The notes beneath the pieces are model-generated. The model had not been told where the DNA came from. It saw only the letters and a list, made by a program, of their open reading frames with translations, and searched no databases. The position numbers were made by a program, and so were the translations under genes. A stretch of 64,000 nucleotides of DNA, from the sequence record MK250028.1, one strand, 5' to 3'. This document shows, in pieces, positions 21,965 to 36,404 of this stretch (positions are counted from its first letter, which is position 1; each line of letters opens with the position of its first letter).

Positions 21965-23035
21965 TTAAAACTAATCCTTATATGCATTATATGTAGCAAT
22001 TACATCTTTAAGATGAATATCAGGGAATAATTGTAATTTTTTCAATACCTATATATAATCCTATCTATTATAATATATATTTCTAGATATTCTATAAGGA
22101 TTCTTTCCAGTTATAACAGATATTAGAATATCGTCATTAAATGAAAGTTGCATATCTTTATAATCTCTATTCTTCGCACATATAAATAAAGCAGCAAGTC
22201 TCGCAACCATTTTATCAGGATTTGTTATCTTATCAAAACCACTATACTTACCGGTCATTAAGCATTTATCCATACGATCAATGTCTTTCTATGTAACTTT
22301 ATATACTTTACCTGTACATGTTAATTCATCAGCAAGTCTCTTTGTGCTAAATATAGTTTCAACTTGTCCTTTTAATGCAATACTAATTTCATTAATTTTC
22401 TTATTTACATTTGAAAACTATTCTTGATTAATCTTATCAATAACTTTATTAATAGGCGCATTTTTATCTTTATCACCTGGTCGGCGTAAAGGCGTTGATG
22501 GATATTTAATTAATTTCCATATAACTTTATAATCTGTTCCAAAATTATTAAATACAACAGCCCATGATTTTAATACTTTTTCTTTATTTCTATATGTAAT
22601 AGTATAAGGTTCCTATTTAATTGTAAATTCAATTTTTTTACTCTATTCCGAACCTATATAACATATAAAATAATATACTTCCTGAAATTTTCCTGTTTCT
22701 GGATCAATAACTGAATTACGGTTAATTATAACCATTTTATTTTTATCAGATAATTTATCTTTATCCATCTTTGATGCCCAAAAGAAACCATTATCCGTAC
22801 ATCTATCTATTTCATTCATAACAGCTACTACTGTATTGATTACCTAATTATTTAAATCGTATTTATTAATAAAATATTCATTTACCTCTTCTTGATTATC
22901 ACACTATCCTAACGATGTTATCTTTGTAGCATTTGAAATTAATTCAGATGTTTTATTTGATGCATCATCATTATATAAATCATCAAATTCATCATCAAAT
23001 AAACTTTCCAATAAAAGTTTGATATTCTTGTTCAT
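21965..23035 (-). CDS. TAG-recoded hypothetical protein (356 aa, 9 TAG)
   Basis: Manually translated; leader MNKNIKLLLESLFDDEFDD; includes track fragment 22061..22273. Confidence 0.8.
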
Positions 23036-23111
23036 AAAACGTTAAAAAATACTTTTATTATTTATTTTTGATATATTTTCATTAATGTGTTTTCTTATTT
23101 CAAATAAATGT

Positions 23112-23123
23112 TGTATCTTTGTA
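23112..23123 (+). promoter_or_regulatory. TAnnTTTG promoter element
   Basis: TGTATCTTTGTA upstream of 23149; heads the run of genes containing the TonB-dependent receptor. Confidence 0.65.
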
Positions 23124-23148
23124 TTGAATTAAATTAAACAATTAAGTT

Positions 23149-23526
23149 ATGATATTAAATATTGATAATTATGAAATATTAAACTTTTATGGATATACGT
23201 CTGTTATTAAACAGGATGAACGTATCTATGAAGTTTCATCATTAGATAATTCACCCAATGAACATATGCGATATGAGAAGTTAAATATTTTTTATAATAA
23301 AATAATAGATAAAATAAGAAATAAAATAGATAAGACAAATATTTTATATTATATATTAGACGATAATAAATGTGTATTTAAACTAAAACATGTTAAATCT
23401 GGAAACATTATCTATATCGGTAAATATGATTTTGAAATTTCCATAGGATTGGATTGTCATCAAAGATTTGGACATTCATATGATTTTATAACAAATAAGG
23501 AAACATATAAAACAGAAGAATTATGA
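23149..23526 (+). CDS. hypothetical protein (125 aa)
   Basis: ORF track. Confidence 0.7.
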   Translation: MILNIDNYEILNFYGYTSVIKQDERIYEVSSLDNSPNEHMRYEKLNIFYNKIIDKIRNKIDKTNILYYILDDNKCVFKLKHVKSGNIIYIGKYDFEISIGLDCHQRFGHSYDFITNKETYKTEEL

Positions 23527-23840
23527 TTATACATAATGCAAAGAATTGTAGAATTAAGGAAGAAGATAAACAAGTGTTAAAGAATGGAGGTATGTTCATT
23601 CTTATAACAATACTTATGATTGTTACTTATGCTTGTATTGTTATGCCTATTAGTATTATGCGAGAAAAGAAGTTTGTTGGTACTGATAATAAAACTGAAG
23701 CACAATTTAAAATTATATTGAGAGACAAATATATTGATGAAGATTTTGTTCAGCAAATTAGCACGAGCGGATGGAATTCATATGAAGTATATGATTCCAA
23801 TATGAAGAAACATAGAATTATATGGAAAGAAGTGGAATAA
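23523..23840 (+). CDS. membrane protein (105 aa)
   Basis: One hydrophobic segment (MFILITILMIVTYACIVMPISIM). Confidence 0.7.
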   Translation: MIIHNAKNCRIKEEDKQVLKNGGMFILITILMIVTYACIVMPISIMREKKFVGTDNKTEAQFKIILRDKYIDEDFVQQISTSGWNSYEVYDSNMKKHRIIWKEVE

Positions 23841-23926
23841 TGAATAGAAAAGAAACTTTATATACAACTATATCATTTATGTTAGGTATAATTATGATAT
23901 TAGTAGTAATTTATTTATTTTCTTGA
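23840..23926 (+). CDS. small membrane peptide (28 aa)
   Basis: ATG overlaps the previous stop; MNRKETLYTTISFMLGIIMILVVIYLFS then TGA. Confidence 0.45.
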   Translation: MNRKETLYTTISFMLGIIMILVVIYLFS

Positions 23927-23965
23927 TAATATAAAATAAGTTTAATTTTTAAATAAAATATCTAA

Positions 23966-26020
23966 ATGAATAAGATTATTTTTTCTATGCTCATTATGGT
24001 AATGAGTATTGCTAACATGTATGCAGAAAATGTTTCTGATACAGTGAAGTTGAAAGAGGTAACTGTTACTTCTCTTTTCCGTAATAATGTGCAGACAGGT
24101 AGTATGATTAATACATCTACACTTAAGTCTTTGAATCATGGTCAGGGAACAGATTATGTATTGCAAAGACTTCCTAATATTTATGCGTATAATGATAATG
24201 GAACACAAATGGGATACTGTTATTTCCGTATGCGTGGCATGGGTCAGGAACGTATGAATGTTACATTGGATGGAATGCCTTGGAACGAAGCAGAAGATTT
24301 TGGATGTTATTTTAGTAATTCTCCAGATCTTATGTCTTCTATGCATACTATTAAGGTAGAGAAAGGTGCATCTGTAACTAATAATGGAACAGCTGCTTAT
24401 GCAGGAAATGTTTCTCTTGAATCTGTAGATTTGAAGAAAGATACCGATTCTTATTTTGACCTTGGATATGGTTCATTTAATTCATCTCGAATTACAGGTG
24501 TTTATAATATGGGACAGAAAGGACATTGGGGATTACATGTTCGTGGCACTGCACAGCAAACTGATGGTTATAAGGAGAATACTTACAATAATTCGAAGGC
24601 AATTACTATTAAGACAGGATATTTCTTTAATGAACGACATTCATTGGATTTCTTGACAATGACTGGTTATCATAGGAATGGACAGGGATTTCAGGGAATT
24701 ACTGAAGATTTAATTCCGAAGCATCCGACACCATTTAAGCAGATGATTTCAGGTAATCGTCAACAGGAAACAGATGATTTCTTAACAACTTATAATAGGT
24801 TTCAATATAAGGGAGTTCTTTCAGACAAAGTATTTCTAACATCATCTGTGTATTGGCAACATCAGACAGGTAATTACCGTATTGGTTGGGATGATGAGAC
24901 ACGACCAACAGGAAGTGTATTGAATAACTATCATCTTAATTATAATTTAACAGGATTTAACACTATTGTAAAGTATTATCCTATTGATAATCTTTCTCTT
25001 ACATCTGGTGTAAATGCTTATGTATATCATCGTAGACATCAGGGATATGATATTGCAAATTCTGATAGTATTATCACTGCATGGAAAAATCCTGGACTTA
25101 CACCATATTATGATAATGCAGGAACAAAACCAGATGTGAATGTATTTGCAAATGTAAAGTATGCACCAGTAAATAAGTTCACTATTGATGCTGCTGTTCA
25201 ATATCGTTATACGTCATTGCATTATCGTGTAAATACACCAATGGATGAATATGATACAAAGTTTAATCATGATTGGAATTTTGTAAATTACAGTATTGGA
25301 CTTAATTATGATATTGATAAGTATTTAAAGGTATATGCACGTTATGCTGTAACAAACCGTGAACCATCTCGAACTGATTTATTCTGTGCAGAGTATCGTT
25401 CAAATGAATCGGAGATGAATACAAAGAATGAGAGAGTTCATGATATTGAAGCAGGTTATGAGATCCGTAACAATAAGGTTAATTTCAATATTAATGGTTT
25501 TTATATGAATTTCAGTAATGAACTTGTTGCAACCGGTGAACTTTCAAAGATGAATGGTCTTCCATTGCATAAGCAACATGATGCATACCGTCTTGGATTG
25601 GAACTTGCCCTTGATTATAATCCTATTAATACATTGCATTTCATTGCAAATGCGGCATGGTCAGAGAATAAATTAAAGAATATTGAAGGTAAGGAAATGA
25701 ATCATACATTCTCACCTTCATCTACATTGTTTGCTGAAGCTAATTATATGGTTAATAAAATTAAGTTTGGTTTGAATACAAATTTCCGTTCATCAATGTA
25801 TATGGATATTTATAATAAGAATAAACTTAAGGAGAATCTTACGTTAAATGCTTATGTAAATGCACGAGTATCAAAGATTGTAGAGTTGAACCTTGTATTG
25901 AATAACATTACAAATAGGCTTAACTTCTCTAATGGCTCTGTAGATATTCCAACCAATACTGCATATTATTTGGTTGATACACCATTTAATATGTTCGCTT
26001 CTGCAAAGTTTCATTTTTAA
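23966..26020 (+). CDS. TonB-dependent outer-membrane receptor, resembling the Bacteroidota thiamine/vitamin TBDR family (684 aa)
   Basis: Signal peptide, TonB-box-like LKEVTVT, plug motifs (RMRGMGQERMNVTLDGMP, IKVEKG), beta-barrel strands, C-terminal Phe (SAKFHF). Confidence 0.9.
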   Translation: MNKIIFSMLIMVMSIANMYAENVSDTVKLKEVTVTSLFRNNVQTGSMINTSTLKSLNHGQGTDYVLQRLPNIYAYNDNGTQMGYCYFRMRGMGQERMNVTLDGMPWNEAEDFGCYFSNSPDLMSSMHTIKVEKGASVTNNGTAAYAGNVSLESVDLKKDTDSYFDLGYGSFNSSRITGVYNMGQKGHWGLHVRGTAQQTDGYKENTYNNSKAITIKTGYFFNERHSLDFLTMTGYHRNGQGFQGITEDLIPKHPTPFKQMISGNRQQETDDFLTTYNRFQYKGVLSDKVFLTSSVYWQHQTGNYRIGWDDETRPTGSVLNNYHLNYNLTGFNTIVKYYPIDNLSLTSGVNAYVYHRRHQGYDIANSDSIITAWKNPGLTPYYDNAGTKPDVNVFANVKYAPVNKFTIDAAVQYRYTSLHYRVNTPMDEYDTKFNHDWNFVNYSIGLNYDIDKYLKVYARYAVTNREPSRTDLFCAEYRSNESEMNTKNERVHDIEAGYEIRNNKVNFNINGFYMNFSNELVATGELSKMNGLPLHKQHDAYRLGLELALDYNPINTLHFIANAAWSENKLKNIEGKEMNHTFSPSSTLFAEANYMVNKIKFGLNTNFRSSMYMDIYNKNKLKENLTLNAYVNARVSKIVELNLVLNNITNRLNFSNGSVDIPTNTAYYLVDTPFNMFASAKFHF

Positions 26021-26060
26021 TAAATAAGGTGTCTTTTATACATATTTTTTTAATTAATTT

Positions 26061-26100
26061 AATAAGGAGAATTAACACGGTAGTTAATTCTCCTTTATTT
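26061..26100. terminator. bidirectional terminator
   Basis: AATAAGGAGAATTAAC...GTTAATTCTCCTTTATTT. Confidence 0.75.
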
Positions 26101-26102
26101 TT

Positions 26103-26468
26103 TTATTCATATGTAATATAATAATCTTTATTAGTTCTAACTTTTAATTTCTTTGCATTAGAAGATGAAATAAAAATAGTAATATCTTCATCTTTTAATT
26201 CATTAAAATCCTTATTAGAATTGATTGTAAGTTTACCATCATTCACATTATATGTAATGTTAGTAAATTTTGATTTAGTTCTGACAGAAACACAATCAAT
26301 AATATCATTGTAAATTCTAACTTTTGCAGGGACATTTACATAAACGACATTAATAGAATCTGTTAATAATGTTGGATTAACTAATGAATTTTCATTAATG
26401 TTAATTTTACCAAAGCATACAGTGATGCTGAATATTCCTATAAGGAATAAAATAAATAATTTTTTCAT
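26103..26468 (-). CDS. secreted protein (121 aa)
   Basis: Signal peptide MKKLFILFLIGIFSITVCFG. Confidence 0.7.
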   Translation of the reverse strand: MKKLFILFLIGIFSITVCFGKININENSLVNPTLLTDSINVVYVNVPAKVRIYNDIIDCVSVRTKSKFTNITYNVNDGKLTINSNKDFNELKDEDITIFISSSNAKKLKVRTNKDYYITYE

Positions 26469-26607
26469 AACGTAATTTATTTAATTTTAAAATTTATTTT
26501 TAACTTTCTTTAACTATCATTTTATTTATCTGAATAATTCATATTTTTAATGTAAGAAAAAGTTTATTATAAATAATGAAATGAAAAATTGAAAACTAAT
26601 TTGATAA

Positions 26608-27867
26608 ATGAGTAAATTAAATGAATAGAATATAAATGAGTTTTTATGGACATGTGCAGGAGTTAATAAAGATGTATTAAGATTATACCCGAGTGAATAT
26701 GCTAAATATGCTGGTAGTGGCGGAACTATTTTATTCACAGCATTAATGGCTATGATTTCTGGTGGATATGCGATGTTTTTTGTATTCAGTAATGTTATTG
26801 TTGCTTTTATATTCGCTATATTTTGGGGATTGCTTATATTTAACCTTGATAGATTTATTGTTAATTCCATGTATACAGATGGTAAAGATTCAATAAGTTG
26901 GAGAAAATTAAAAGCAGCACTTCCTAGAATTATAATGGCAATATTTTTAGGTATAGTTATATCGACACCTCTCGAGATGAAGATATTTAATGATAGAATT
27001 GAATCATAGTTATTGAAAGATAATATAGAGAGAATAAATTCAGCAAAGAATGAATCATCTGATTATAAAACAATTTCATTATTACAAACTGAATAGAGTT
27101 AGTTATCAAAAGAAAGAAAACAACTGGTAGACGATTTACAAAAAGCATAGAAAGATTTAAAGGAAGAAGCAGAGGGAAATGCATTATCTGGTATGGTTGG
27201 GCATGGATCTATATATAGAGACAAAGAGATTTATGTTAACCAATGTAAATAGTCATTATCTGAATGGGATAAACTTCATAAAGAAAGATTAACAACTATA
27301 TAGAAAAGAATAGATGACGTTAATCAACATATCAATAAGTTTGAAGATAAAGTTGATAATTTAAAAGAAGATGGATTTAGCGCACGTTATGAAGCGTTTT
27401 CAAATTTAAGAAAATAGAATTCATCTTTAGAAATTGTTTCATTAATGATAACAATGTTGTTTATAATAATAGAGATAACTCCTACATTTTTTAAACTTAT
27501 TATGATAGCAGGACCTTATGATGAACATATGAGAATTGAACAATATAAGATTTCTGCATATGTATAGAAAGAAAAGAATAATGTAGATACAGATTTAAAA
27601 ATAGATGAATATAATAATAAACAAAAATTAAAATCTATTATAAAAGAAGATATTGATATAATTGAATTGAAAGATGAACAAAAACCTATTACATATTCAT
27701 CTATTAAACCATTAACAATAGATGAAGAACCTGAAATTGTACCTTATTAGGTAAAGTCAAATACAAAAATAGAAACAAAAACTATTACACCGAATAAAGA
27801 ACTTGAATTTAAGAGGAATTCAAAGGGATAGTTATTACTAGATTTTTCATCAAGACATAAAAGTTAA
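26608..27867 (+). CDS. TAG-recoded DUF4407-like membrane/coiled-coil protein (419 aa, 11 TAG)
   Basis: FLWTCAGV...PSEYAKYAG.GGTILFTA...SGGYAM, FNLDRFIV, AIFLGIVISTPLE, IEITPTFFKL motifs; open frame to TAA 27867 if TAG is read through. Confidence 0.8.
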
Positions 27868-27875
27868 AAATATTT

Positions 27876-27918
27876 AAAATGAACATTAGGTGATATAAAA
27901 CTTAATGTTCATTTTTTT
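27876..27918 (+). terminator. intrinsic terminator
   Basis: AAAATGAACATTAGG...CTTAATGTTCATTTTTTT. Confidence 0.7.
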
Positions 27919-27930
27919 ATATAAAGAAAT

Positions 27931-27945
27931 ATGTGTATCTTTGTA
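27931..27945 (+). promoter_or_regulatory. TAnnTTTG promoter element
   Basis: ATGTGTATCTTTGTA; implies the real start is ATG 27972, not 27933. Confidence 0.65.
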
Positions 27946-27971
27946 ATATAATAATTAAAACATTAAATAAT

Positions 27972-28979
27972 ATGGAAGAGAAACTTATTTTGAAAATGTG
28001 TAAGTCTGCAACGAAGCTTAATAAATATATCATTACTGTTAAAGGCAAGTATAATAATATGTTACCTTATGAAACAAAAATGGTAACAGTAGATGCTGAT
28101 ATGATGAATGATTTTGTATTGTTGTTCTTATCATATATGGGTAATAGAAATTGGAAGCATACATGGAAGGATTGTAAGTTTGGAGAAGACTTCAAACATG
28201 GACCATTGCAGACATATCTCGGAGCATTTACAGATGATTGTCATTATCCTTGTATTGATATTAATTGGAATGATGTTATTTCTGTAAAACTTTCATATAT
28301 TGATGAAAATTCCACTTATTATGAGTGTACACTTCCTGATGTGGAAGAGTTGTATGAAACAGAGGAATATTTCTTGAAAGAACTTAAAGAAAAGTTTAAT
28401 GTATTCAATAAGAATGATAAGAGAGACGATTTGGATGATGGTACAGAACTAGTAGATTCATATGAGTTGGAACTTGTTCGTAACATTCTTCGTTCGACTG
28501 GTAAGTGGGATGATAGAGATATTGATAATTTGTTCTTTATCAATAACGATATTGGGTTTACTTCAATATGTGCAAGAGATTCTTATTATGATGATTTATT
28601 GAAGGTCATTAAACAGGAATATGCAAAGAGTGCAACCGGTGTTGAATATGGTGGATTTAAACCAGAAACTTTTGAAAAAGTTCATAATGCTATTATGAAG
28701 TCTGATCTTCCAGATGAAACAAAATCTTTTGCTATCGACATTTGTGGTAAGTACAATAAGAATAATATTTTATCTGAAAATCAGAAGAAAGAATTAAAAA
28801 AGATTATTGAGTCTTTTAATATTCTTAATGGTACTTATGGTTGTGTTGGACCTAATGGTTGGAGTGGTATTTACATTCAGCATGTTATTGATCCAGAACA
28901 GATTGATTTTGATGATTTTGATGAGAATGAAGTCATTAAATATGAAGGTGAAACTTATATTATTCATGAAGGAGATTAA
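27972..28979 (+). CDS. hypothetical protein (335 aa)
   Basis: ORF track 27933..28979; start moved to MEEKL because the track start lies inside the promoter motif. Confidence 0.8.
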   Translation: MEEKLILKMCKSATKLNKYIITVKGKYNNMLPYETKMVTVDADMMNDFVLLFLSYMGNRNWKHTWKDCKFGEDFKHGPLQTYLGAFTDDCHYPCIDINWNDVISVKLSYIDENSTYYECTLPDVEELYETEEYFLKELKEKFNVFNKNDKRDDLDDGTELVDSYELELVRNILRSTGKWDDRDIDNLFFINNDIGFTSICARDSYYDDLLKVIKQEYAKSATGVEYGGFKPETFEKVHNAIMKSDLPDETKSFAIDICGKYNKNNILSENQKKELKKIIESFNILNGTYGCVGPNGWSGIYIQHVIDPEQIDFDDFDENEVIKYEGETYIIHEGD

Positions 28980-28982
28980 TAT

Positions 28983-29393
28983 ATGATTTTAACAGAAATA
29001 ATATCAATAATAGTCTTATTCTATGGAATTTTTATAGGATTCTTTAGCGGAGTTCTTGGTGAAAAAGGAGATAGTGAAGAATATACATATAAGTTAGGAC
29101 CTATAGATGATTTATCACCATTATTTAAATGTGGAAATCGTTTTATAATTCCATGTGTATTATTTGCTTCACCAATAGGTTTTCTTGGAATTCCTTTATT
29201 GTATTTAGGCTTATGTATAATTTTCGCATGTTTTGGAATTGATATTTATATATTAAGTGATAATACATTGAATATTATAGGACCTTATATATTACTATAT
29301 TTTATATCATTGATGATAGGATATAGTATAGGATGTTTTGTGACTAAAAAAGTAATATCTAATTTAATAAAGAAATATAATTATGAAAAATAA
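28983..29393 (+). CDS. multi-pass membrane protein (136 aa)
   Basis: Three to four hydrophobic segments. Confidence 0.7.
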   Translation: MILTEIISIIVLFYGIFIGFFSGVLGEKGDSEEYTYKLGPIDDLSPLFKCGNRFIIPCVLFASPIGFLGIPLLYLGLCIIFACFGIDIYILSDNTLNIIGPYILLYFISLMIGYSIGCFVTKKVISNLIKKYNYEK

Positions 29394-29895
29394 TAAATTT
29401 TATATTATTTTAGGATATAATGCACTTGATGAATCATATTGTGGTTATGTAGAGAATTCATTCTCTATGGGATGTGATGATGAGAGAGTACAGTTGTATT
29501 CTGTAAGTAAAGGAGATTTTCCGTGGAAGAATCGAGATTTTCCTGAGAGAAAGAAAAAAGCAAAGAAATATCTAAAAGAAAATGGTGGTAGAAAAGCTTC
29601 TTTTGCACATGATTATATTCCTGATGCTTATATGAATCCAAATTCTCCAAACCAATGGATTTGGTTTTATTTGCGTGATATTGCAGACAATTTGAATAAG
29701 AAACATTATAATAATTGTTATTGGCAAGTATTTCGTGTTAACAGTAAACATTGCCCTGTTAATATAGATATGAAAGAATATTATAAGATTCAACATAATA
29801 AGAAATATAGAATGACATTAACGAAATATGAAATAAGAAATATTAAATTTACAGTACAAGATCCTTTATTATTAGACTTTATACGTAATATTTAA
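29383..29895 (+). CDS. hypothetical protein (170 aa)
   Basis: ORF track; overlaps the previous gene. Confidence 0.75.
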   Translation: MKNNKFYIILGYNALDESYCGYVENSFSMGCDDERVQLYSVSKGDFPWKNRDFPERKKKAKKYLKENGGRKASFAHDYIPDAYMNPNSPNQWIWFYLRDIADNLNKKHYNNCYWQVFRVNSKHCPVNIDMKEYYKIQHNKKYRMTLTKYEIRNIKFTVQDPLLLDFIRNI

Positions 29896-29907
29896 TATAA
29901 AAAATAT

Positions 29908-30186
29908 ACAGTATATAATTTTGTTATCTAAGTACATGATAATAAAATAGTGCATATCTAGTAAGACTATATGTATTTCAGTAATGGTACTGAAAGTGTT
30001 AATCGTTACTCACGAAACAATATAAGAGTTATATGTTATATAGTAAAGACTAATATTGCAAAAGGTTAATACGCATATATAACATATATACCATTTGAGA
30101 TTATGGTGAATAATTGCAATTAGAATGTAACCATAATAATATGGCGGACCAATATAACATTCTGGGTTCGATTCCCTATATACTGT
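29908..30186 (+). ncRNA. structured RNA of about 280 nt with a tRNA-like T-arm/acceptor 3' end
   Basis: ACAGTATATA (29908-17) pairs with TATATACTGT (30177-86); GGG-TTCGATT-CCC T-loop; several 6-11 bp internal hairpins. Confidence 0.45.
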
Positions 30187-30238
30187 CTAAATAAAAAATT
30201 AAAAAAAGATTCATAATTATTTTTTTAATTAAAAAAGA

Positions 30239-30253
30239 ATGTGTATCTTTGTA
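30239..30253 (+). promoter_or_regulatory. TAnnTTTG promoter element upstream of non-coding elements
   Basis: ATGTGTATCTTTGTA with no ORF downstream. Confidence 0.6.
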
Positions 30254-30268
30254 TTGTAAGAAATAAAA

Positions 30269-30388
30269 ATGGTGATACAACCTATAAGCCATAGGTAACA
30301 TGAGTTCGGTAACCTCATGGTTCGTAAGTCGTGATAACGAATAGTCTCGGTAATAGTTGAAAAACCTTCATCGGTTATGTATCATTAT
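30269..30388 (+). ncRNA. multibranch structured RNA, unknown class
   Basis: 11-bp closing stem ATGGTGATACA/TGTATCATTAT enclosing CCTAT/ATAGG, CATGAG/CTCATG, TTCGT/ACGAA and TGAA/TTCA hairpins. Confidence 0.45.
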
Positions 30389-30593
30389 TTAACATTCATA
30401 TGAGAATTAACGAAATGTCTCATATGAGCATGAGGAGTATTCCAACGGAGCCGGTGTGTTTGGATTTTTAGTTGTGCATTTTTAATCTGACTATATTGTT
30501 GAGAAACAATGAAAAAGAAGATACGTCGTCAGTACAAGTCCATATAATAATTTCGAAATAAAAATGGAAACTGTTAAAAATCGTATCTATTTT

Positions 30594-30691
30594 GGTTATG
30601 TTACATAATGGTTAATGAGGTATCTAATTGATATTTTAATATCAATGGAAGAAAGGTATTGCGGTGACGAGTTCGAGTCCCTCCATAACCA
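30594..30691 (+). tRNA. degenerate tRNA-like element (possible AAT anticodon, long variable arm)
   Basis: Acceptor GGTTATG/CATAACC, D-loop AATGGTTA, TTCGAGT T-loop; T-stem imperfect, no CCA. Confidence 0.35.
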
Positions 30692-30911
30692 CTCCTTATA
30701 ATAATGAAAAGGATGCAATTATCTAACATAGATATTATTATAGTATAAGAAATTATGATAATTCTTAAAATGATAATCAAGAGATTGAAGTAACTAATTA
30801 ATGTATAGTTACTAAGGCGAAAGTATAACTGCAATTATATTAGTAGTTGACGTTTAAAAGATTGAAGAAAATTATTTGTAGATAATTTTTGGATTGATAT
30901 TAAATGTAAAA

Positions 30912-31005
30912 ATTATAATAGTGTAGCGGGAATGCACGCTCGATGATAAATCGAGAAGGGATTAACGGTATGAGGTTATTAAGGGTTCGACTCCCTCTTA
31001 TAAAC
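30912..31005 (+). tRNA. atypical tRNA-like element, anticodon ATA (Tyr-like, long variable arm)
   Basis: D-stem GTGT/GCAC, anticodon stem CTCGA/TCGAG with loop TGATAAA, T-arm AAGGG-TTCGACT-CCCTC, 6/7-bp acceptor, no CCA; G at position 33 is non-canonical. Confidence 0.5.
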
Positions 31006-31011
31006 AAATTT

Positions 31012-31166
31012 AAATACATATATTCTCACGAAGAGCGAGTAAGAGAAGGTGAGCAAATTATGTCTAATGTTATAAGTGATCATAATAACAGATAAAACAT
31101 AACAGAATTATCTTAACGTAGGAGCTGTAAAAGGATGAACGTATGGTAACATCATTATATGTATTT
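31012..31166 (+). ncRNA. structured RNA, unknown class
   Basis: AAATACATAT/ATATGTATTT closing stem with internal TTCTC/GAGAA and other stems. Confidence 0.35.
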
Positions 31167-31293
31167 TTATTGAATTTTTAATTGTTTGAAAATAACTTAA
31201 TATATGTTACTACATCAAACTAATGACATATAAAATCAAACCAAGATGATAAGACAGAATTAAGTTATTTTTAATTTGTTTTGTTTATTTTCT

Positions 31294-31327
31294 AAAAGTC
31301 TATAATGGTTTTCATTATAGACTTTTT
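31294..31327 (+). terminator. intrinsic terminator ending the RNA island
   Basis: AAAAGTCTATAATG-GTTTT-CATTATAGACTTTTTT. Confidence 0.75.
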
Positions 31328-31340
31328 TATTTAAAATAAA

Positions 31341-31353
31341 ATGTGTATCTTTG
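31341..31353 (+). promoter_or_regulatory. TAnnTTTG promoter element heading the nadR-pnuC run
   Basis: ATGTGTATCTTTG upstream of 31394. Confidence 0.65.
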
Positions 31354-31393
31354 AAATATAAATTATAAGTAAAATAAAGTTGAATTATTAATT

Positions 31394-31807
31394 ATGTATT
31401 ATATAAATCATGAATTAGTTAATGTAGTAGAGATTGATCCTTTTGAAATTGAATCTGGAAACTTTCCTGATGAGATGATAACTATAGATGAATTAATAGA
31501 TAGAATAAAGAATAAGAAACCTATTAAACAAGGTATTAAAATTCATTTTAATATGTATGACATCATTTATGATGTAAATTCACATATATTTATGCATGAC
31601 ACATTCATTCATATTCCTACTAATACAAAGATATTTGTAGAATATGATGAGAATTGGGGATGGGAACGTACATTTCTTCTTATTCCTAATTATTCAGAAA
31701 AAATATGGATAGGAGATAATAATGAAGATTGTTGGTGGGATGCTACTCACAATGAAGGTTCTTATTCTTTTGAGATGAAATCTTTTATTGAAATAGAAAT
31801 AGATTAA
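31394..31807 (+). CDS. hypothetical protein (137 aa)
   Basis: ORF track. Confidence 0.75.
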   Translation: MYYINHELVNVVEIDPFEIESGNFPDEMITIDELIDRIKNKKPIKQGIKIHFNMYDIIYDVNSHIFMHDTFIHIPTNTKIFVEYDENWGWERTFLLIPNYSEKIWIGDNNEDCWWDATHNEGSYSFEMKSFIEIEID

Positions 31808-31827
31808 TATATTTAAATTTAATAAAA

Positions 31828-32985
31828 ATGAGTAAGAATATAGGAATTTGTTTTGGCGGATATTGTCCAATGCATCAAGGTCATCTTGATGTTATTATGC
31901 GAGCAAAGAAAGAATCAGATATTGTTTATGTTGTTGTATGTGGATATACAGATGAACCACGTGCAAATGAAATAGGTTTGAATATAAAGCAACGAGAACG
32001 ACTTATTAGAGAATATTTTAAAGGCGATGAGATTATAAAAGTTGTTACTGTTAATGATACAGAATTAGGTATTGATGAAAGTATGTCTGAACATAATTGG
32101 AAAGTATGGACTGATTATGTGAAGAAACTTATTGTTAACAAAGTTTTAGACCATAAAGATAATTGGCCTTTTACAGTAGACGATACTATTAACGCATTTG
32201 AGTTGAAACTTACTTTTTATGTTGGCGAGAAGTTTTATGTTAAATCATTAGAGAAATTAAATTATAATGTTGTATTGGTAGGATATGACAGCAATTCACC
32301 TTCTAACAGAAGTAATGATATTTCTGCAACTCTTATACGTCAAAGACCACAACTTTACTGGAATAAGATTGTATCTACATTCAAACCAAAACTAACAAAG
32401 AAGATTCTTGTATTAGGAACAGCATCAGAAGGCAAATCAACTCTTGTAAAAGATATTGGTAATTATTTTCAGGTTCCATATACTACTGAATTTGGTAGGG
32501 ATTATATGGCGAAACATTGTATGTTAGATCCAGATATTACAGTAAACGATTTTGTTGAATTCCTTATAGGACAAAGACAATATTATTTTGATGCGCTTAA
32601 CAGTGATAAGAATAAAGGTGTTATTATTTCTGATACTGATAATCTCGTTACTCTTATGTATGCGAAAGCATATACAATGGATAAGAACATGCAGATTACT
32701 GAAAAAGAATATAATGATATATTGTTACCACTTGCAAAATCATTGCAGACTAATGTAGATTGGGATGTAATTTATCTTATCAAACCACATAATACATTTG
32801 TCGATGATGGAACACGTTATATGGAGCAAAGTTCTATTGAAGAACGTATGAAAAATTATCATATTCTTGTTAAACTATTGGAGGACTTTGATTTACTTCA
32901 TAAGGTTATAGAACTAGATGGTACATATCTTGAACATTTTGATTATGTAAAGAATTATATAAATACACTCTATGAAAAGTATTAA
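31828..32985 (+). CDS. nadR: NadR-type NMN adenylyltransferase / ribosylnicotinamide kinase (no HTH)
   Basis: N-terminal HxGH (PMHQGH) nucleotidyltransferase; C-terminal P-loop GTASEGKST, EFGRDY, SDTD; overlaps pnuC. Confidence 0.92.
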   Translation: MSKNIGICFGGYCPMHQGHLDVIMRAKKESDIVYVVVCGYTDEPRANEIGLNIKQRERLIREYFKGDEIIKVVTVNDTELGIDESMSEHNWKVWTDYVKKLIVNKVLDHKDNWPFTVDDTINAFELKLTFYVGEKFYVKSLEKLNYNVVLVGYDSNSPSNRSNDISATLIRQRPQLYWNKIVSTFKPKLTKKILVLGTASEGKSTLVKDIGNYFQVPYTTEFGRDYMAKHCMLDPDITVNDFVEFLIGQRQYYFDALNSDKNKGVIISDTDNLVTLMYAKAYTMDKNMQITEKEYNDILLPLAKSLQTNVDWDVIYLIKPHNTFVDDGTRYMEQSSIEERMKNYHILVKLLEDFDLLHKVIELDGTYLEHFDYVKNYINTLYEKY

Positions 32986-33634
32986 TAATATTTTATATAC
33001 AGAGTTTATAAAAGGAAGAAACATATTTGAACATATGTTTCTTCTTGTAGGTATAATATTACAATTTATTGTATATTATATTACAAACGATACAATGATT
33101 TCATTAATATCTGGAGTAACAGGTATTATATCTGTTGTATTATGTTCACAGAGAAAAATTTCATTTTATTTCTTTGGATTTATACAATTATTTACTTATA
33201 TGTATTTAGCATGGCAGCAGAAATTTTATGGTGAATTAGTAGAAAATATATTCTATATAATTACCATGATTATAGGTATTGTTACATGGTTAAAGAATTA
33301 TAATAAGGATGAACAAATAGTAGAATCTAAAAGACTTTCTAATATACAGTTAAGTATAATAAGTAGTATAATGATTTTATTGTGTATTTTATTTGGGTAT
33401 TATATGAGTAATTATACAGATAATACACAACCATATATGGATGCTTTTTCTACAATACCGGCATTTATAGCACAAACATTATTGATGATGAGATATAGGG
33501 AACAATGGATATTTTGGATTATAATTGATATTGTATCTATATTTATGTGGGGAATCGCTGATAATTGGATAATGGTAATTCAATTCATATTTTGGACATT
33601 AAATTGTTTATACGGTTATATAAAATGGAAATAA
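32972..33634 (+). CDS. pnuC: PnuC-family nicotinamide riboside transporter
   Basis: Seven-TM profile; PYMDAF...AQTLLMMRYREQWIFWIIIDIV motifs. Confidence 0.92.
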   Translation: MKSINNILYTEFIKGRNIFEHMFLLVGIILQFIVYYITNDTMISLISGVTGIISVVLCSQRKISFYFFGFIQLFTYMYLAWQQKFYGELVENIFYIITMIIGIVTWLKNYNKDEQIVESKRLSNIQLSIISSIMILLCILFGYYMSNYTDNTQPYMDAFSTIPAFIAQTLLMMRYREQWIFWIIIDIVSIFMWGIADNWIMVIQFIFWTLNCLYGYIKWK

Positions 33635-33641
33635 TGTAAAC

Positions 33642-33863
33642 ATGGCAGGATTTGTTATTATTGTAATTGTTATTTGCATAACTGTTTATGCGATATATGA
33701 TTCTAAGCATACATCGGAAGTAGAGCAAACATTCTGGGGTAAAGATAAAAGCGATTCATCCAGATTAAAAAAAGTTAATGAAAGAATTACATCATTAGTA
33801 AGTAGAGTGGAATTACTTGAAAATAAAGTAAAGAGATTAGAAAATAATAATATAATAGAATAA
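33642..33863 (+). CDS. small membrane-anchored coiled-coil protein (73 aa)
   Basis: N-terminal TM segment, heptad C-terminus. Confidence 0.65.
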   Translation: MAGFVIIVIVICITVYAIYDSKHTSEVEQTFWGKDKSDSSRLKKVNERITSLVSRVELLENKVKRLENNNIIE

Positions 33864-33864
33864 A

Positions 33865-34317
33865 ATGGAGCGGATAAATTTTGAAGTATATGATTGGTTG
33901 AAAGAACATCAAAAAGAAAATAATTATTCAGACCAATTTATTGAAGCATATAAAGAATGTTATTTTTTAAATAGGTTATCTGGTAAATTCTTTCTTGGAA
34001 CATACGCGGGTTATTCAGTAAAGCCTGATAATAGTGATAAATCTTATTTCGTAGAAGACGGAATTAGAGGACAAGTAAAAGGATATTTTACCGTTTTAAA
34101 TGGTAAACTTATTCAACTTGATCCTTTATCTGATATTCAAAATTATGATAAGTATACCAAATTAAAGGATAATCTACATAAATATATGTATACTAGACTT
34201 GAAAATATTGAGATGCTGAGAAAAATTTATTCAGATAGAACTGATGAAATAAAAACACAAATAGATGAACATATTAATTCATTGAATACAATAATTTATC
34301 TATTATCTAAATATTAA
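33865..34317 (+). CDS. hypothetical protein (150 aa)
   Basis: ORF track. Confidence 0.7.
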   Translation: MERINFEVYDWLKEHQKENNYSDQFIEAYKECYFLNRLSGKFFLGTYAGYSVKPDNSDKSYFVEDGIRGQVKGYFTVLNGKLIQLDPLSDIQNYDKYTKLKDNLHKYMYTRLENIEMLRKIYSDRTDEIKTQIDEHINSLNTIIYLLSKY

Positions 34318-34330
34318 TAATTAACAAAAT

Positions 34331-34501
34331 ATGATTATGAATTTTATAAGTTGGATCTGTATTATATATACAGCATTTACATTGGTTTGTTTTGTATGGC
34401 TAACATATGCTATTAAGAAAGCTCCATTAGTAGATCCTCAAGAACCATTTTTAAAAGGTGATATAAAATCTGAAGATCTAGAAGAAGATAAGGAGGAATA
34501 A
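34331..34501 (+). CDS. small membrane protein (56 aa)
   Basis: Manual translation MIMNFISWICIIYTAFTLVCFVWLTYAIKKAP...; fills the gap between neighbours. Confidence 0.6.
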   Translation: MIMNFISWICIIYTAFTLVCFVWLTYAIKKAPLVDPQEPFLKGDIKSEDLEEDKEE

Positions 34502-34504
34502 GTT

Positions 34505-35266
34505 ATGGCTTACATAGATAAAACATATATATCTGATTATCAGCAGTTTATACAAGTTAGAGATTGGTGTAAAGATAAAAAAGTAGAATTAAAAAATGGA
34601 TTAGTGTATAATGCTATTGATTTCCTTATGTATCCTGATATAACAGAAGAAGAATTCAATAGTTGGAAAAATGAAATTATTCAACGACATATAAAAACAT
34701 ATAATGAATCAAAGGAAGACGCTGAAAAACATTTTGAAATTCCTCTTTGGAATACATCAACATATTTCGATATTTGGCTTATAAGAAATTGCCCTATTGA
34801 TTTTATTCAAAATAGGTTAAAAGAACAATATGGTGAAGAATATAATCAAATAAAGAATTATAGATCTGAACATGATACATATCAGAGAAATGGATTAGGG
34901 AAGAATTTTCATTATAAGGTAATTGAAAAACCTAATTGGAAACCAAGATATAATTTTATTTATACTGATAGACATAGTAATAAGAAAGTATATAAAGAAA
35001 GTAGGAAATCTTGGTGGTTTGTTGAACTTCGAGATTTATCAGGTAATGATATAATGTGGGAAGCAAATCAGGAGTATAATTATTGGACTAATTGGATTGA
35101 ATCATTACCATTTACATCTAATATGATGGATATTAGGAAAAAGAAAAATCTTAATATTCACTCTATTATTAGAATGATAAAACATTGGGATTTACCTGCT
35201 AATACACAAGTTAAAGTTGTAAATAGATACTTTAATTATGGGTGGATAATTAACATTAAGAAATAA
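34505..35266 (+). CDS. hypothetical protein (253 aa)
   Basis: ORF track. Confidence 0.75.
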   Translation: MAYIDKTYISDYQQFIQVRDWCKDKKVELKNGLVYNAIDFLMYPDITEEEFNSWKNEIIQRHIKTYNESKEDAEKHFEIPLWNTSTYFDIWLIRNCPIDFIQNRLKEQYGEEYNQIKNYRSEHDTYQRNGLGKNFHYKVIEKPNWKPRYNFIYTDRHSNKKVYKESRKSWWFVELRDLSGNDIMWEANQEYNYWTNWIESLPFTSNMMDIRKKKNLNIHSIIRMIKHWDLPANTQVKVVNRYFNYGWIINIKK

Positions 35267-35339
35267 TATTAATAGGATGATATAAACTAATATATCATCC
35301 TATTATTTTAATAAATATTTAAATGTTAATTTTTATTAA

Positions 35340-36404
35340 ATGAATAAATTAATTAAGAAATTAATGGAGGGATTATTTGATGATTTTGATGATGAAATTT
35401 TATCAAATTCAGATAATTCAAATAATGTATCTCAATAGATAATTGAAACGGAAGATAAACCTAAAATTAAAGAATGGTTGTTAGATAATATTATTTGTAA
35501 ATATGGAACATCATTTAAATGTGATGAAGGTAATGATATTGAATATACATTTGAATCAGATGGATTACATTGTAATTTAAAATTTAATGTACAAGTTGCA
35601 AAATTTATGAATTCTATTCCAGATTATGTTAAAATTAATAAAATAACTTGTAATACTGTAGAATTTGCAGACTTTATTAATTTACCTAAAGAAATAGATG
35701 GGACATTAAATATAAAAGGATGTAAGGAAAAAGATTTAAATGTACAATTACCAGAGAAATTAGGTGTATTATCGCTTATTAATTGTAAAATACGTTCATT
35801 GAAAGGATTAAGTAATACATGTAAATCAATAGAGCATCTTTATATAGAAAATTGTAATATGTTTACTTCATTTAATGGAATTCCAGATAATGTTGGATTT
35901 ATATAGTTAATTAAATGTAAGAAAATAGTAGATTTAGAAGGAATTCCAGATTCAGTAGAGAGAATTGTATTAGTTTCATTACCTTCATTTGAAAGTTTAA
36001 AAGGATGTCCAAATAAATTAAGTAATGGATTGTATATATAGGAGTGTCCATATTTAACCACATTAGCATATTGTCCATCATTAATAATGGACCAATGTGA
36101 AATACATGATTGTATGTTATATCAGTTAGATATGAAAAATACAAGAATTTGTGGTACATTTAAATTAAGTAATAATAATTTATCAGATTTAGAAAATGGA
36201 CCAAAACAGATAGACGGATCATATATAGTTTCGGAACTGTATTTAGCAAAATTTAAAGCTAATGAAACTATTATGACAAATGCGTATAATAATGCGGAAT
36301 TTATATATCAAGTTAGGAAAAAATATTTTAAAGGAAATAAAAATGACATGCCATAGATGAACAATGGTGTAAAAATTGTATGTCAATATTTTGAAGACCT
36401 TTAA
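35340..36404 (+). CDS. TAG-recoded leucine-rich-repeat protein (354 aa, 4 TAG)
   Basis: Joins track fragments 35478..35906 and 36087..36356; repeats SLKGLS, SFNGIP, DLEGIP, SLKGCP, DLENGP; LFDD leader. Confidence 0.8.

Follow-up and report, generated by a model that had tools for sequence, protein, structure and literature searches.

A TonB-dependent transporter gene of Lak megaphages and its linkage to nadR and pnuC: a candidate outer-membrane step in NAD+ precursor uptake

What use would a bacteriophage have for an outer-membrane transporter gene of its own? The question is raised by the first 64 kb (64,000 nucleotides, referred to here in full as the window) of Lak-B9 (MK250028), a Prevotella phage from baboon faeces whose circular genome of 550,053 bp is deposited without annotation. 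The window is strongly AT-rich (GC content 0.20-0.36), and many of the long genes in it have an open frame only when TAG is translated as sense. An original prediction, made from the letters alone, had described an intact TonB-dependent receptor (TBDR) in this DNA and had proposed it as the outer-membrane step for a nearby PnuC/NadR module. Near-universal co-occurrence of these genes in related phages, together with bacterial operons that combine the same functions, supports this proposal, under which the protein would transport a precursor of nicotinamide adenine dinucleotide (NAD+). We consider it probable, though well short of certain, that the TBDR provides the outer-membrane step of a phage-encoded pathway from nicotinamide riboside (NR) to NAD+.

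The gene and the parts of its product are as follows.

23966 to 26020, plus strand: TonB-dependent outer-membrane transporter of 684 amino acids (P0001), from its open reading frame (ORF), Pfam matches and an AlphaFold2 model.
Residues 1-20: signal peptide.
Residues ~28-36: TonB box.
Residues ~46-160: plug.
Residues ~163-684: 22-strand barrel.

The reading frame is open in translation table 11, contains no in-frame TAG and ends in TAA. Pfam places the Plug family (PF07715) at residues 48-147 (3.5e-8, 34.4 bits against a cut-off of 23.9) and TonB_dep_Rec_b-barrel (PF00593) at residues 227-648 (4.8e-17, over the curated cut-off). The N-terminus, MNKIIFSMLIMVMSIANMYA|EN, reads by motif as a signal peptide and is followed by a Bacteroidota-style TonB box, KLKEVTVTS, whose pattern L-x-E-V-x-V-x-S is kept at the motif level in phage and bacterial members; the C-terminus, ...KFHF, ends on the terminal Phe. 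An AlphaFold2 model built from a 48-sequence alignment (mean pLDDT 89.1, pTM 0.87) predicts a plug seated in a 22-strand barrel, and Foldseek aligns this model with solved TonB-dependent transporters (TBDTs), the best of them Fiu, PqqU, YncD, FyuA and FecA, with FhuA and BtuB also matched, at E-values of 1e-30 to 1e-38 and TM-scores of 0.7-0.84. Reading frame, domain matches and modelled fold agree with the earlier description of an intact, TAG-free, 684-residue receptor with signal peptide, plug, barrel and terminal Phe. Database searches gave little by which to name it: a single-sequence search of PDB chains with the TBDR returned no match, and the NCBIfam scan returned only far sub-threshold matches and hence no named equivalog.

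The gene belongs to the phage, as had been claimed. Positions 23000-27000 of the window match circular Lak-B9 at 100% identity with unchanged coordinates by megablast, and the TBDR gene occurs in all 15 Lak-A, Lak-B and Lak-C records: the eight other Lak-B genomes match the same interval at 99-100%, the gene's position being the same in all nine, and in the curated circular genomes Lak-A1, Lak-A2 and Lak-C1 synteny is kept, with 84.7% nucleotide identity over the TBDR part. Bacterial DNA wrongly joined to the phage bin would explain why local GC content rises to 0.33 at the TBDR from 0.235 in the flanks, and why the family is elsewhere typical of Bacteroidota. Yet third codon positions of the gene have a GC content of 0.225, near the 0.18-0.19 of adjacent phage genes, whereas the GC content of bacterial homologue loci is 40-49%; the nearest cellular proteins are just 34-37% identical to the Lak-B9 TBDR; and phage-specific promoter and terminator cassettes stand on both sides of the gene. 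Comparison of Lak-B with Lak-A/C-like copies gives a dN/dS of 0.13, which denotes purifying selection. Because synteny holds throughout the 15 curated Lak genomes, third-position composition is phage-like and the gene is under purifying selection, it is not host DNA, and contamination or mis-assembly is effectively refuted.

The partners proposed for the TBDR lie downstream on the same strand.

31828 to 32985, plus strand: NadR-type bifunctional nicotinamide mononucleotide (NMN) adenylyltransferase/ribosylnicotinamide kinase of 385 amino acids, with no helix-turn-helix (HTH) domain, from Pfam and motifs.
32972 to 33634, plus strand: PnuC-type NR transporter of 220 amino acids (PF04973, 4.3e-44).

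The module, which had been put at roughly 6 kb from the TBDR, begins 5.8 kb downstream of it, and the start of PnuC overlaps the stop of NadR by 14 nt. NadR comprises CTP_transf_like (residues 8-173) and AAA_28 (residues 192-367) domains by Pfam and keeps the adenylyltransferase motifs GGYCPMHQGH (HxGH) and ISATLIR (ISxTxxR-like) as well as the kinase Walker A motif GTASEGKST. It matches over its full length NadR of Lactococcus lactis (6GYE, 6e-47), NadR of Escherichia coli (8X7F, 1e-24) and the phage protein Bas30_86 (9X6F, 3e-15), while residues 11-219 of PnuC match the NR transporter of Neisseria mucosa (4QTN, 4.5e-26). Given the NadR motifs and the PnuC match to 4QTN, the predicted partners in Lak-B9 are of the NR type. 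Beyond the window, Lak-B9 encodes a NAPRTase-family enzyme (194634-195521, minus strand, 530-aa frame) and an NAD-dependent DNA ligase (257448-258131, minus strand, 712-aa frame), and therefore a second entry point for NAD salvage and an NAD consumer.

Is the proximity of these genes peculiar to Lak, or does it recur? A word-based protein search recovered TBDR homologues in a continuum from 97% down to 41% identity, and all of the contexts fetched for them were large-phage-like contigs of up to 473 kb with many small unannotated ORFs and phage markers. A scan of IMG/VR for the two peptides best conserved in the family yielded 29 loci. Neighbours were detected over all loci by tblastn and iterated hidden Markov model search, and the resulting 32 distinct phage-borne loci encode TBDRs 26-86% identical to that of Lak-B9. 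A NadR homologue follows the TBDR within 0-8.9 kb in 29 of the 32, and PnuC was detected beside NadR in 22, which is the co-occurrence across related phages that the original prediction had offered as a check. As for the three exceptions to NadR linkage, one contig ends inside the TBDR (L059), one has a truncated TBDR followed by PnuC (L050), and the third (L002) is resolved by its close relative L069, where NadR lies 8.9 kb downstream. The linkage extends to deep viral clades (L052-L062) with TBDRs only 26-29% identical to the Lak protein, and the genes abut or overlap in L005, L042, L047 and L057. Representative arrangements, with identity to the Lak-B9 TBDR in brackets where available, are as follows.

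P0006/L068 (65%): TBDR, DUF4407, two ORFs, NadR, PnuC.
P0009 (61%): TBDR, two ORFs, NadR, PnuC, with PARG, NUDIX and NAD synthase nearby.
P0028/L067 (54%): TBDR, three ORFs, NadR, two ORFs, PnuC, with terminase and prohead protease nearby.
P0038/L005-7 (46%): TBDR stop overlapping the NadR start, then PnuC.
P0046/L004 and P0106/L070 (~43%): TBDR, NadR and PnuC inside 1-5 kb.
L002/L069, an abundant group with a 675-aa TBDR: NadR 8.9 kb downstream, past an inserted helicase block.

Other genes of NAD or ADP-ribose metabolism also occur near the triad, namely ADP_ribosyl_GH in L002/L069, the PARG, NUDIX and NAD synthase genes of the P0009 contig, and a faint isochorismatase match at 13410-14042 in L005; this suggests wider NAD islands around the triad in related phages.

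We considered whether the TBDR might instead import a different small molecule, for example a nucleoside, a metal complex or a cofactor of another kind, and merely share an uptake island with the NAD genes. The top structural match by TM-score is PqqU/YncD (0.81/0.84 for PqqU), an importer of pyrroloquinoline quinone (PQQ), and a profile search of the PDB returned only weak matches to siderophore-receptor barrels, which are uninformative on substrate. In addition, three other megaphage lineages have a gene of the formate/nitrite transporter (FNT) family (PF01226, ~185-200 aa) upstream of the TBDR at a distance of 1-4 kb (about 5147-5746 in L002/L069, 6288-6887 in L004 and 8297-8851 in L070). 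TBDT fold similarity is silent on substrate, however; the FNT gene is absent from Lak-B9; and the neighbours that recur immediately beside the TBDR are NadR and PnuC, even with overlapping stop and start codons. We therefore regard a different solute as unlikely, and the FNT gene, which recurs in other megaphages and not in Lak-B9, was rejected as a fourth member of the module.

Linkage of the same three functions is also found in cellular genomes. A scan of prokaryotes with one genome per species returned 26 loci of the TBDR family, with Pfam-confirmed TBDR-PnuC-NadR operons in two Prevotella metagenome-assembled genomes (MAGs), Barnesiella, Dysgonomonas, Cytophagales, Cellvibrio and Cyclobacteriaceae. 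Other Bacteroidaceae members are solitary and stand beside housekeeping genes such as those for DnaA and IF-2. A thiamine pyrophosphate (TPP) riboswitch (RF00059) lies directly upstream of two Muribaculaceae/Bacteroidales members that are 37% identical to the Lak protein (L014 and L028) and of two members from Pseudomonadota and Gemmatimonadota (L027 and L030). A permissive Rfam search found no TPP element at the orphan Bacteroidaceae loci L009, L010 and L017, so the sister clade of the phage proteins is not uniformly of the thiamine type. In the Lak-B9 window no riboswitch matched Rfam at the gathering score, the other phage loci not having been scanned. As judged from these contexts, the family appears to span thiamine-type and NR-type settings, which by itself does not decide the substrate.

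We placed these members on a maximum-likelihood tree of 51 sequences (LG+C20, quick search), rooted with the riboswitch-linked L027 and L030, both of which have long branches. The Lak and other megaphage TBDRs form a single clade of 18 (SH-aLRT 99), in which 16 rows, Lak-B9 included, have both nadR and pnuC in their flanks; the remaining lineage is that of L002, with the distant NadR of L069 described above. Its sister group (support 100) is a gut Bacteroidales clade of 14, which includes a PnuC/NadR-linked subclade (L011, L029 and L015), a small riboswitch-linked pair and the orphans. Additional viral NadR-linked clades and the bacterial TBDR-PnuC-NadR clade are placed farther away on the tree. 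The riboswitch-linked state is nested and rare on this tree, and linkage to NadR/PnuC is probably both the majority state around the phage clade and the older one. Since the root is set by the chosen outgroup, we claim no direction of transfer. One sequence inside the phage clade (L020, JAFRDD010000051.1) comes from a goat ileum MAG labelled 'Clostridia bacterium'; it has a GC content of 0.27, carries all three genes and probably represents a megaphage contig wrongly binned with bacterial DNA.

These results bear on the possibility that the protein is an OMthi-type transporter of thiamine or a thiamine precursor, with the nearness of NadR-PnuC being coincidental or the PnuC being PnuT-like. 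The four riboswitch-controlled members, two of them in the sister clade, speak for it, as does the established pairing of OMthi (BT2390) with PnuT in Bacteroides (PMC5613172). Against this, the family on the tree is mostly PnuC-NadR-linked, and its riboswitch-linked members are confined to a single small, nested subclade and some distant outliers. No gene for thiamine pyrophosphokinase turned up beside the phage TBDRs; their constant partner is a NadR with a ribosylnicotinamide kinase domain, and the Lak PnuC matches an NR transporter. Linkage to pnuT and thiamine pyrophosphokinase (tnr3) is also lacking: the Lak-B9 neighbours are NadR and an NR-type PnuC, and Pfam matched no thiamine kinase among the ORFs at 23149-23840, 26103-29895 and 31394-36404 (29895-31394 was not scanned). 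We thus consider thiamine transport very unlikely. The resemblance to thiamine TBDRs noted in the original prediction holds for the family, which has TPP-riboswitch members and a pair of them in the sister clade, and does not carry over to the Lak window, which lacks the riboswitch and has partners of the NR type.

If the TBDR sits at the cell surface, might it act there on other phages rather than on nutrients? In this alternative the protein displaces, masks or mimics a host TBDT that serves as a phage receptor, and transport is irrelevant. TBDTs are common phage receptors, and structures of FhuA-T5 and FhuA-Llp are among the Foldseek matches to the modelled fold. An October 2026 preprint that names the Lak TBDR alongside phage OmpA and OmpX discusses receptor interference and superinfection exclusion and favours such a role, citing lambda Lom (bioRxiv 10.64898/2026.10.24.761521). 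The pattern of conservation in the phage clade bears on this as well. Extracellular loops L4-L6 are variable, as a surface decoy might have them, but conservation is strongest in the plug and the TonB box, for which a decoy would have no use: the plug has a mean top-residue frequency of 0.75 with 41% of its positions at least 90% conserved, compared with mean frequencies of 0.59 for strands, 0.54 for extracellular loops and 0.42 for periplasmic turns. Two signatures recur with little or no change in phage and bacterial members: PWNEAED in the plug (residues 105-111) and REPSRTDLF where extracellular loop 7 begins (residues 465-473). Such a pattern is what would be expected of a working transporter rather than of an inert surface decoy. 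Furthermore, closest cellular relatives at 34-37% identity imply that the TBDR is no mimic of a current host protein, and exclusion leaves the nadR/pnuC linkage across deep phage clades and bacteria unexplained. Superinfection exclusion or receptor remodelling as the main role is accordingly quite unlikely in our judgment; it may be a role additional to transport.

Transport of an NAD+ precursor remains the reading we prefer, and we propose that it would proceed as follows. The TBDR would be made early in infection and inserted into the outer membrane of the Prevotella host. The whole Lak-B9 record contains a single Plug domain and no match to TonB_C or MotA_ExbB (ExbD was not searched); because the phage lacks TonB or ExbB of its own, the transporter would have to use the host Ton system, with TonB-ExbBD of the host energising it. 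It would carry a pyridine nucleoside precursor of NAD+, most likely NR and possibly NMN, into the periplasm, from where the phage PnuC would take it across the inner membrane and the HTH-less phage NadR would phosphorylate and adenylylate it to NAD+. Vitamin uptake in Bacteroidota is commonly carried out by TBDTs rather than porins, and the three genes would amount to a two-membrane version, adapted to Bacteroidota, of NARP3, a PnuC-NadR system of enterobacterial phages. The likely benefit to the phage would be NAD+ for replication and/or resistance to host defences that deplete NAD+, a benefit through replication being suggested because the phage has an NAD-dependent ligase. We see as evenly poised the broader proposition that large phages of Bacteroidota run a self-encoded TBDR-PnuC-NadR line to NAD+ ('NARP3-OM') with which they scavenge NR from the gut lumen and outrun NAD+-depleting immunity.

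Several observations weigh against an NR-to-NAD+ pathway of this kind. The substrate assignment is drawn wholly from genomic context. Several deep viral clades (L052-L054, L056 and L060) have NadR with no detectable PnuC near the TBDR, and Lak-B9 itself has no single operon: 5.8 kb separate the TBDR from NadR-PnuC, and the two are predicted to be transcribed as distinct units. The 29 linked loci do not equal 29 independent events because the phage lineages are related. Finally, the family includes members under TPP-riboswitch control, from which it follows that specificity can switch inside it.

Should the TBDR import NR, the implications would extend beyond Lak. Its family would then reveal which outer-membrane protein takes up NR in Bacteroidota themselves, a transporter not characterised to date and a sister specificity to the thiamine transporter OMthi, and it would point to bacterial outer-membrane NR transporters of relevance to the vitamin B3 economy of the gut. 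Phage NAD+ counter-defence would reach the outer membrane in Bacteroidota, a phage would be relying on host TonB machinery for an auxiliary function, and a conserved gene of Lak megaphages, whose genomes of ~550 kb are mostly unannotated, would have a testable function.

How might the two units be expressed? The elements that frame them are these.

23112 to 23121, plus strand: promoter-like motif TGTATCTTTG at the head of the TBDR unit, from the exact-copy count.
23149 to 23526, plus strand: 125-aa ORF, first gene of the TBDR unit, with no transmembrane (TM) or hydrophobic segment by hydropathy.
23523 to 23840, plus strand: 105-aa ORF with one TM helix (residues ~21-48) predicted by hydropathy.
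23840 to 23926, plus strand: putative hydrophobic mini-ORF of 28 aa with one TM-like helix, just before the TBDR, from sequence reading and hydropathy.
26064 to 26095, plus strand: intrinsic-terminator-like hairpin (13-bp stem and T-run), 44 nt past the TBDR stop.
31344 to 31353, plus strand: second copy of TGTATCTTTG, at the head of the p137-NadR-PnuC unit and preceded by a hairpin at 31294-31326.
35270 to 35305, plus strand: terminator-like hairpin at the end of the NadR-PnuC unit.

The two units share the motif TGTATCTTTG, of which the window has 9 exact copies where 0.33 would be expected; none of 100 shuffles reached that count. The motif includes TAnnTTTG, the -7 element of Bacteroidota promoters, and may well act as a promoter. 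Between 22 and 36 kb each copy precedes a run of TAG-free ORFs, and elsewhere mostly TAG-free ORFs follow; two units intervening between TBDR and NadR-PnuC also begin with it (27934 and 30242). With the copy at 23112 standing before 23149-26020 and the terminator-like hairpin behind, the TBDR does lie in a promoter-headed run as first described. The accompanying description of two small membrane proteins applies to the 105-aa ORF, with its one TM helix, and not to the 125-aa ORF, which has no hydrophobic segment. These two ORFs have no Pfam or NCBIfam match. The 125-aa ORF is 60% conserved in the Lak-A/C-like loci L036 and L037, with no counterpart detected next to the TBDR of phages further removed, the 105-aa ORF is 44-45% identical in the same two loci, and the small ORFs upstream of the TBDR are conserved within Lak only. 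We accordingly rejected the 125- and 105-aa ORFs as TonB/ExbD-like partners in a conserved module.

The copies of TGTATCTTTG at 27934 and 31344 come directly after a hairpin and T-run, forming a repeated cassette (27876-27943 and 31294-31353) in which (A)TGTGTATCTTTG follows the T-run by about 20 nt; further copies of the 10-mer stand at 613, 2927, 5294, 9309, 30242 and 45756. The cassette looks like a host-type early promoter class of Lak phages, built on the Bacteroidota -7 box. Both the TBDR unit and the NadR-PnuC unit are TAG-free, with recoded genes between them, and early expression by host machinery would fit the host-like promoter element and the compatibility with the standard code. 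A scan for sigma-70-type promoters was set aside, as it found 98 against 116 expected and is uninformative in AT-rich DNA.

Among the intervening genes, one of the DUF4407 family (26608-27867, plus strand; Pfam 1e-70) lies between two TAG-free, promoter-headed units and is readable only with 11 TAGs as sense codons; a table-11 ORF on the minus strand (26547-26870) is probably its antisense shadow. The order of TBDR then DUF4407 is the same in L068 as in Lak-B9. Next to the TBDR on the minus strand, a 121-aa ORF (26103-26468) has a hydrophobic, signal-like N-terminus ending ...ITVCFGK, as a lipoprotein might, and matches DUF2807/adhesin-head weakly (E 0.0017). This ORF occurs in Lak-B only and is absent from Lak-A/C-like loci. 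On the plus strand, a 136-aa ORF (28983-29393) has several hydrophobic TM-like segments and a 73-aa ORF (33642-33863) has one N-terminal TM segment, each with no family match. ARAGORN calls a 93-nt tRNA-Tyr with anticodon ATA at 30913-31005 on the plus strand, which is doubtful or unusual, there being no Rfam tRNA at gathering score in the window.

Reference data contain few phage-encoded TBDTs, and no substrate has been assigned to any of them. In BFVD the Lak TBDR has a single full-length viral match, the 805-aa SusC-like TBDR of the marine megaphage Mar_Mega_1, which was read as a carbohydrate uptake protein (PMC9723777) and is 14% identical to the Lak protein. TonB goes unmentioned in the Lak papers of 2019 and 2021, the earlier of which is also silent on outer membrane, receptor, NAD and PnuC; a 2024 survey of gut jumbo phages noted pnuC and nadR with no TBDR. 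The October 2026 preprint reports that the Lak genome cluster HP2985 encodes a 22-strand TonB-dependent receptor transcribed in gut metatranscriptomes, a statement that is the sole source of evidence for expression of the Lak TBDR, and lists NMN-transport genes among the neighbours of 22-strand phage outer-membrane proteins; in the passages searched, the TBDR is not tied to NadR and PnuC as one pathway (bioRxiv 10.64898/2026.10.24.761521).

Among characterised transporters, PqqU/YncD, Fiu and FecA have the plug-in-22-strand-barrel architecture predicted for the Lak TBDR, and PqqU imports a small organic cofactor; sequence identity is 12-15%, and because the TBDT fold does not report substrate, none can be inferred from this likeness. 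A comparable pairing is OMthi (BT2390)/PnuT of Bacteroides thetaiotaomicron, in which a TBDT and a Pnu-family inner-membrane transporter take up a cationic vitamin (PMC5613172). TPP-riboswitch-headed members occur in the family of the Lak TBDR and in its sister clade, and the relationship to BT2390 would appear close as judged from the riboswitch-linked members of that sister clade only. The Lak-B9 window differs from OMthi/PnuT in having no TPP riboswitch, in having no pnuT-tnr3 or thiamine genes near the TBDR among the Pfam-scanned ORFs, and in having NadR as the partner enzyme.

The bacterial TBDR-PnuC-NadR operons, for which our literature search found no characterising paper, share with Lak a TBDR family (27-37% identity) marked by the motifs PWNE[AS]ED and [RK]EP[ST]R..D[ML]F, and their three functions are adjacent as in phages. 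Gene order differs, being TBDR-PnuC-NadR in bacteria and TBDR-NadR-PnuC in the megaphage clade, and NadR and PnuC of Lak are 45-51% identical among phages but just 21-27% identical to the bacterial operon neighbours. This low identity and the differing gene order suggest an old phage module, perhaps of mosaic origin.

The closest phage precedent is NARP3, the PnuC-NadR pair Bas30_87/Bas30_86 of Escherichia phage TrudiRoth, which imports NR and rebuilds NAD+ against Sir2-HerA (Sci Adv, August 2026; PMC13464706). That report describes a two-gene system of enterobacterial phages with no mention of outer membrane, TonB or porin, and the anti-defence role has been shown for Bas30_86/87 in E. coli only, the Lak genes being known from sequence. 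Lak resembles NARP3 in its adjacent, co-oriented genes for a PnuC-type transporter and an HTH-less bifunctional NadR, in the match of its NadR to Bas30_86, and in the match of its PnuC to 4QTN, which Bas30_87 also matches; its NadR is nevertheless nearer to that of L. lactis than to Bas30_86. Whereas NARP3 itself and, from the preprint, the existence of a Lak TBDR were already known, the new finding here is an arrangement of three parts spanning two membranes, conserved in phages and with a counterpart in bacteria: Lak-B9 and about 30 other large phages of the Bacteroidota type differ from NARP3 in having a dedicated TonB-dependent transporter linked to the pair.

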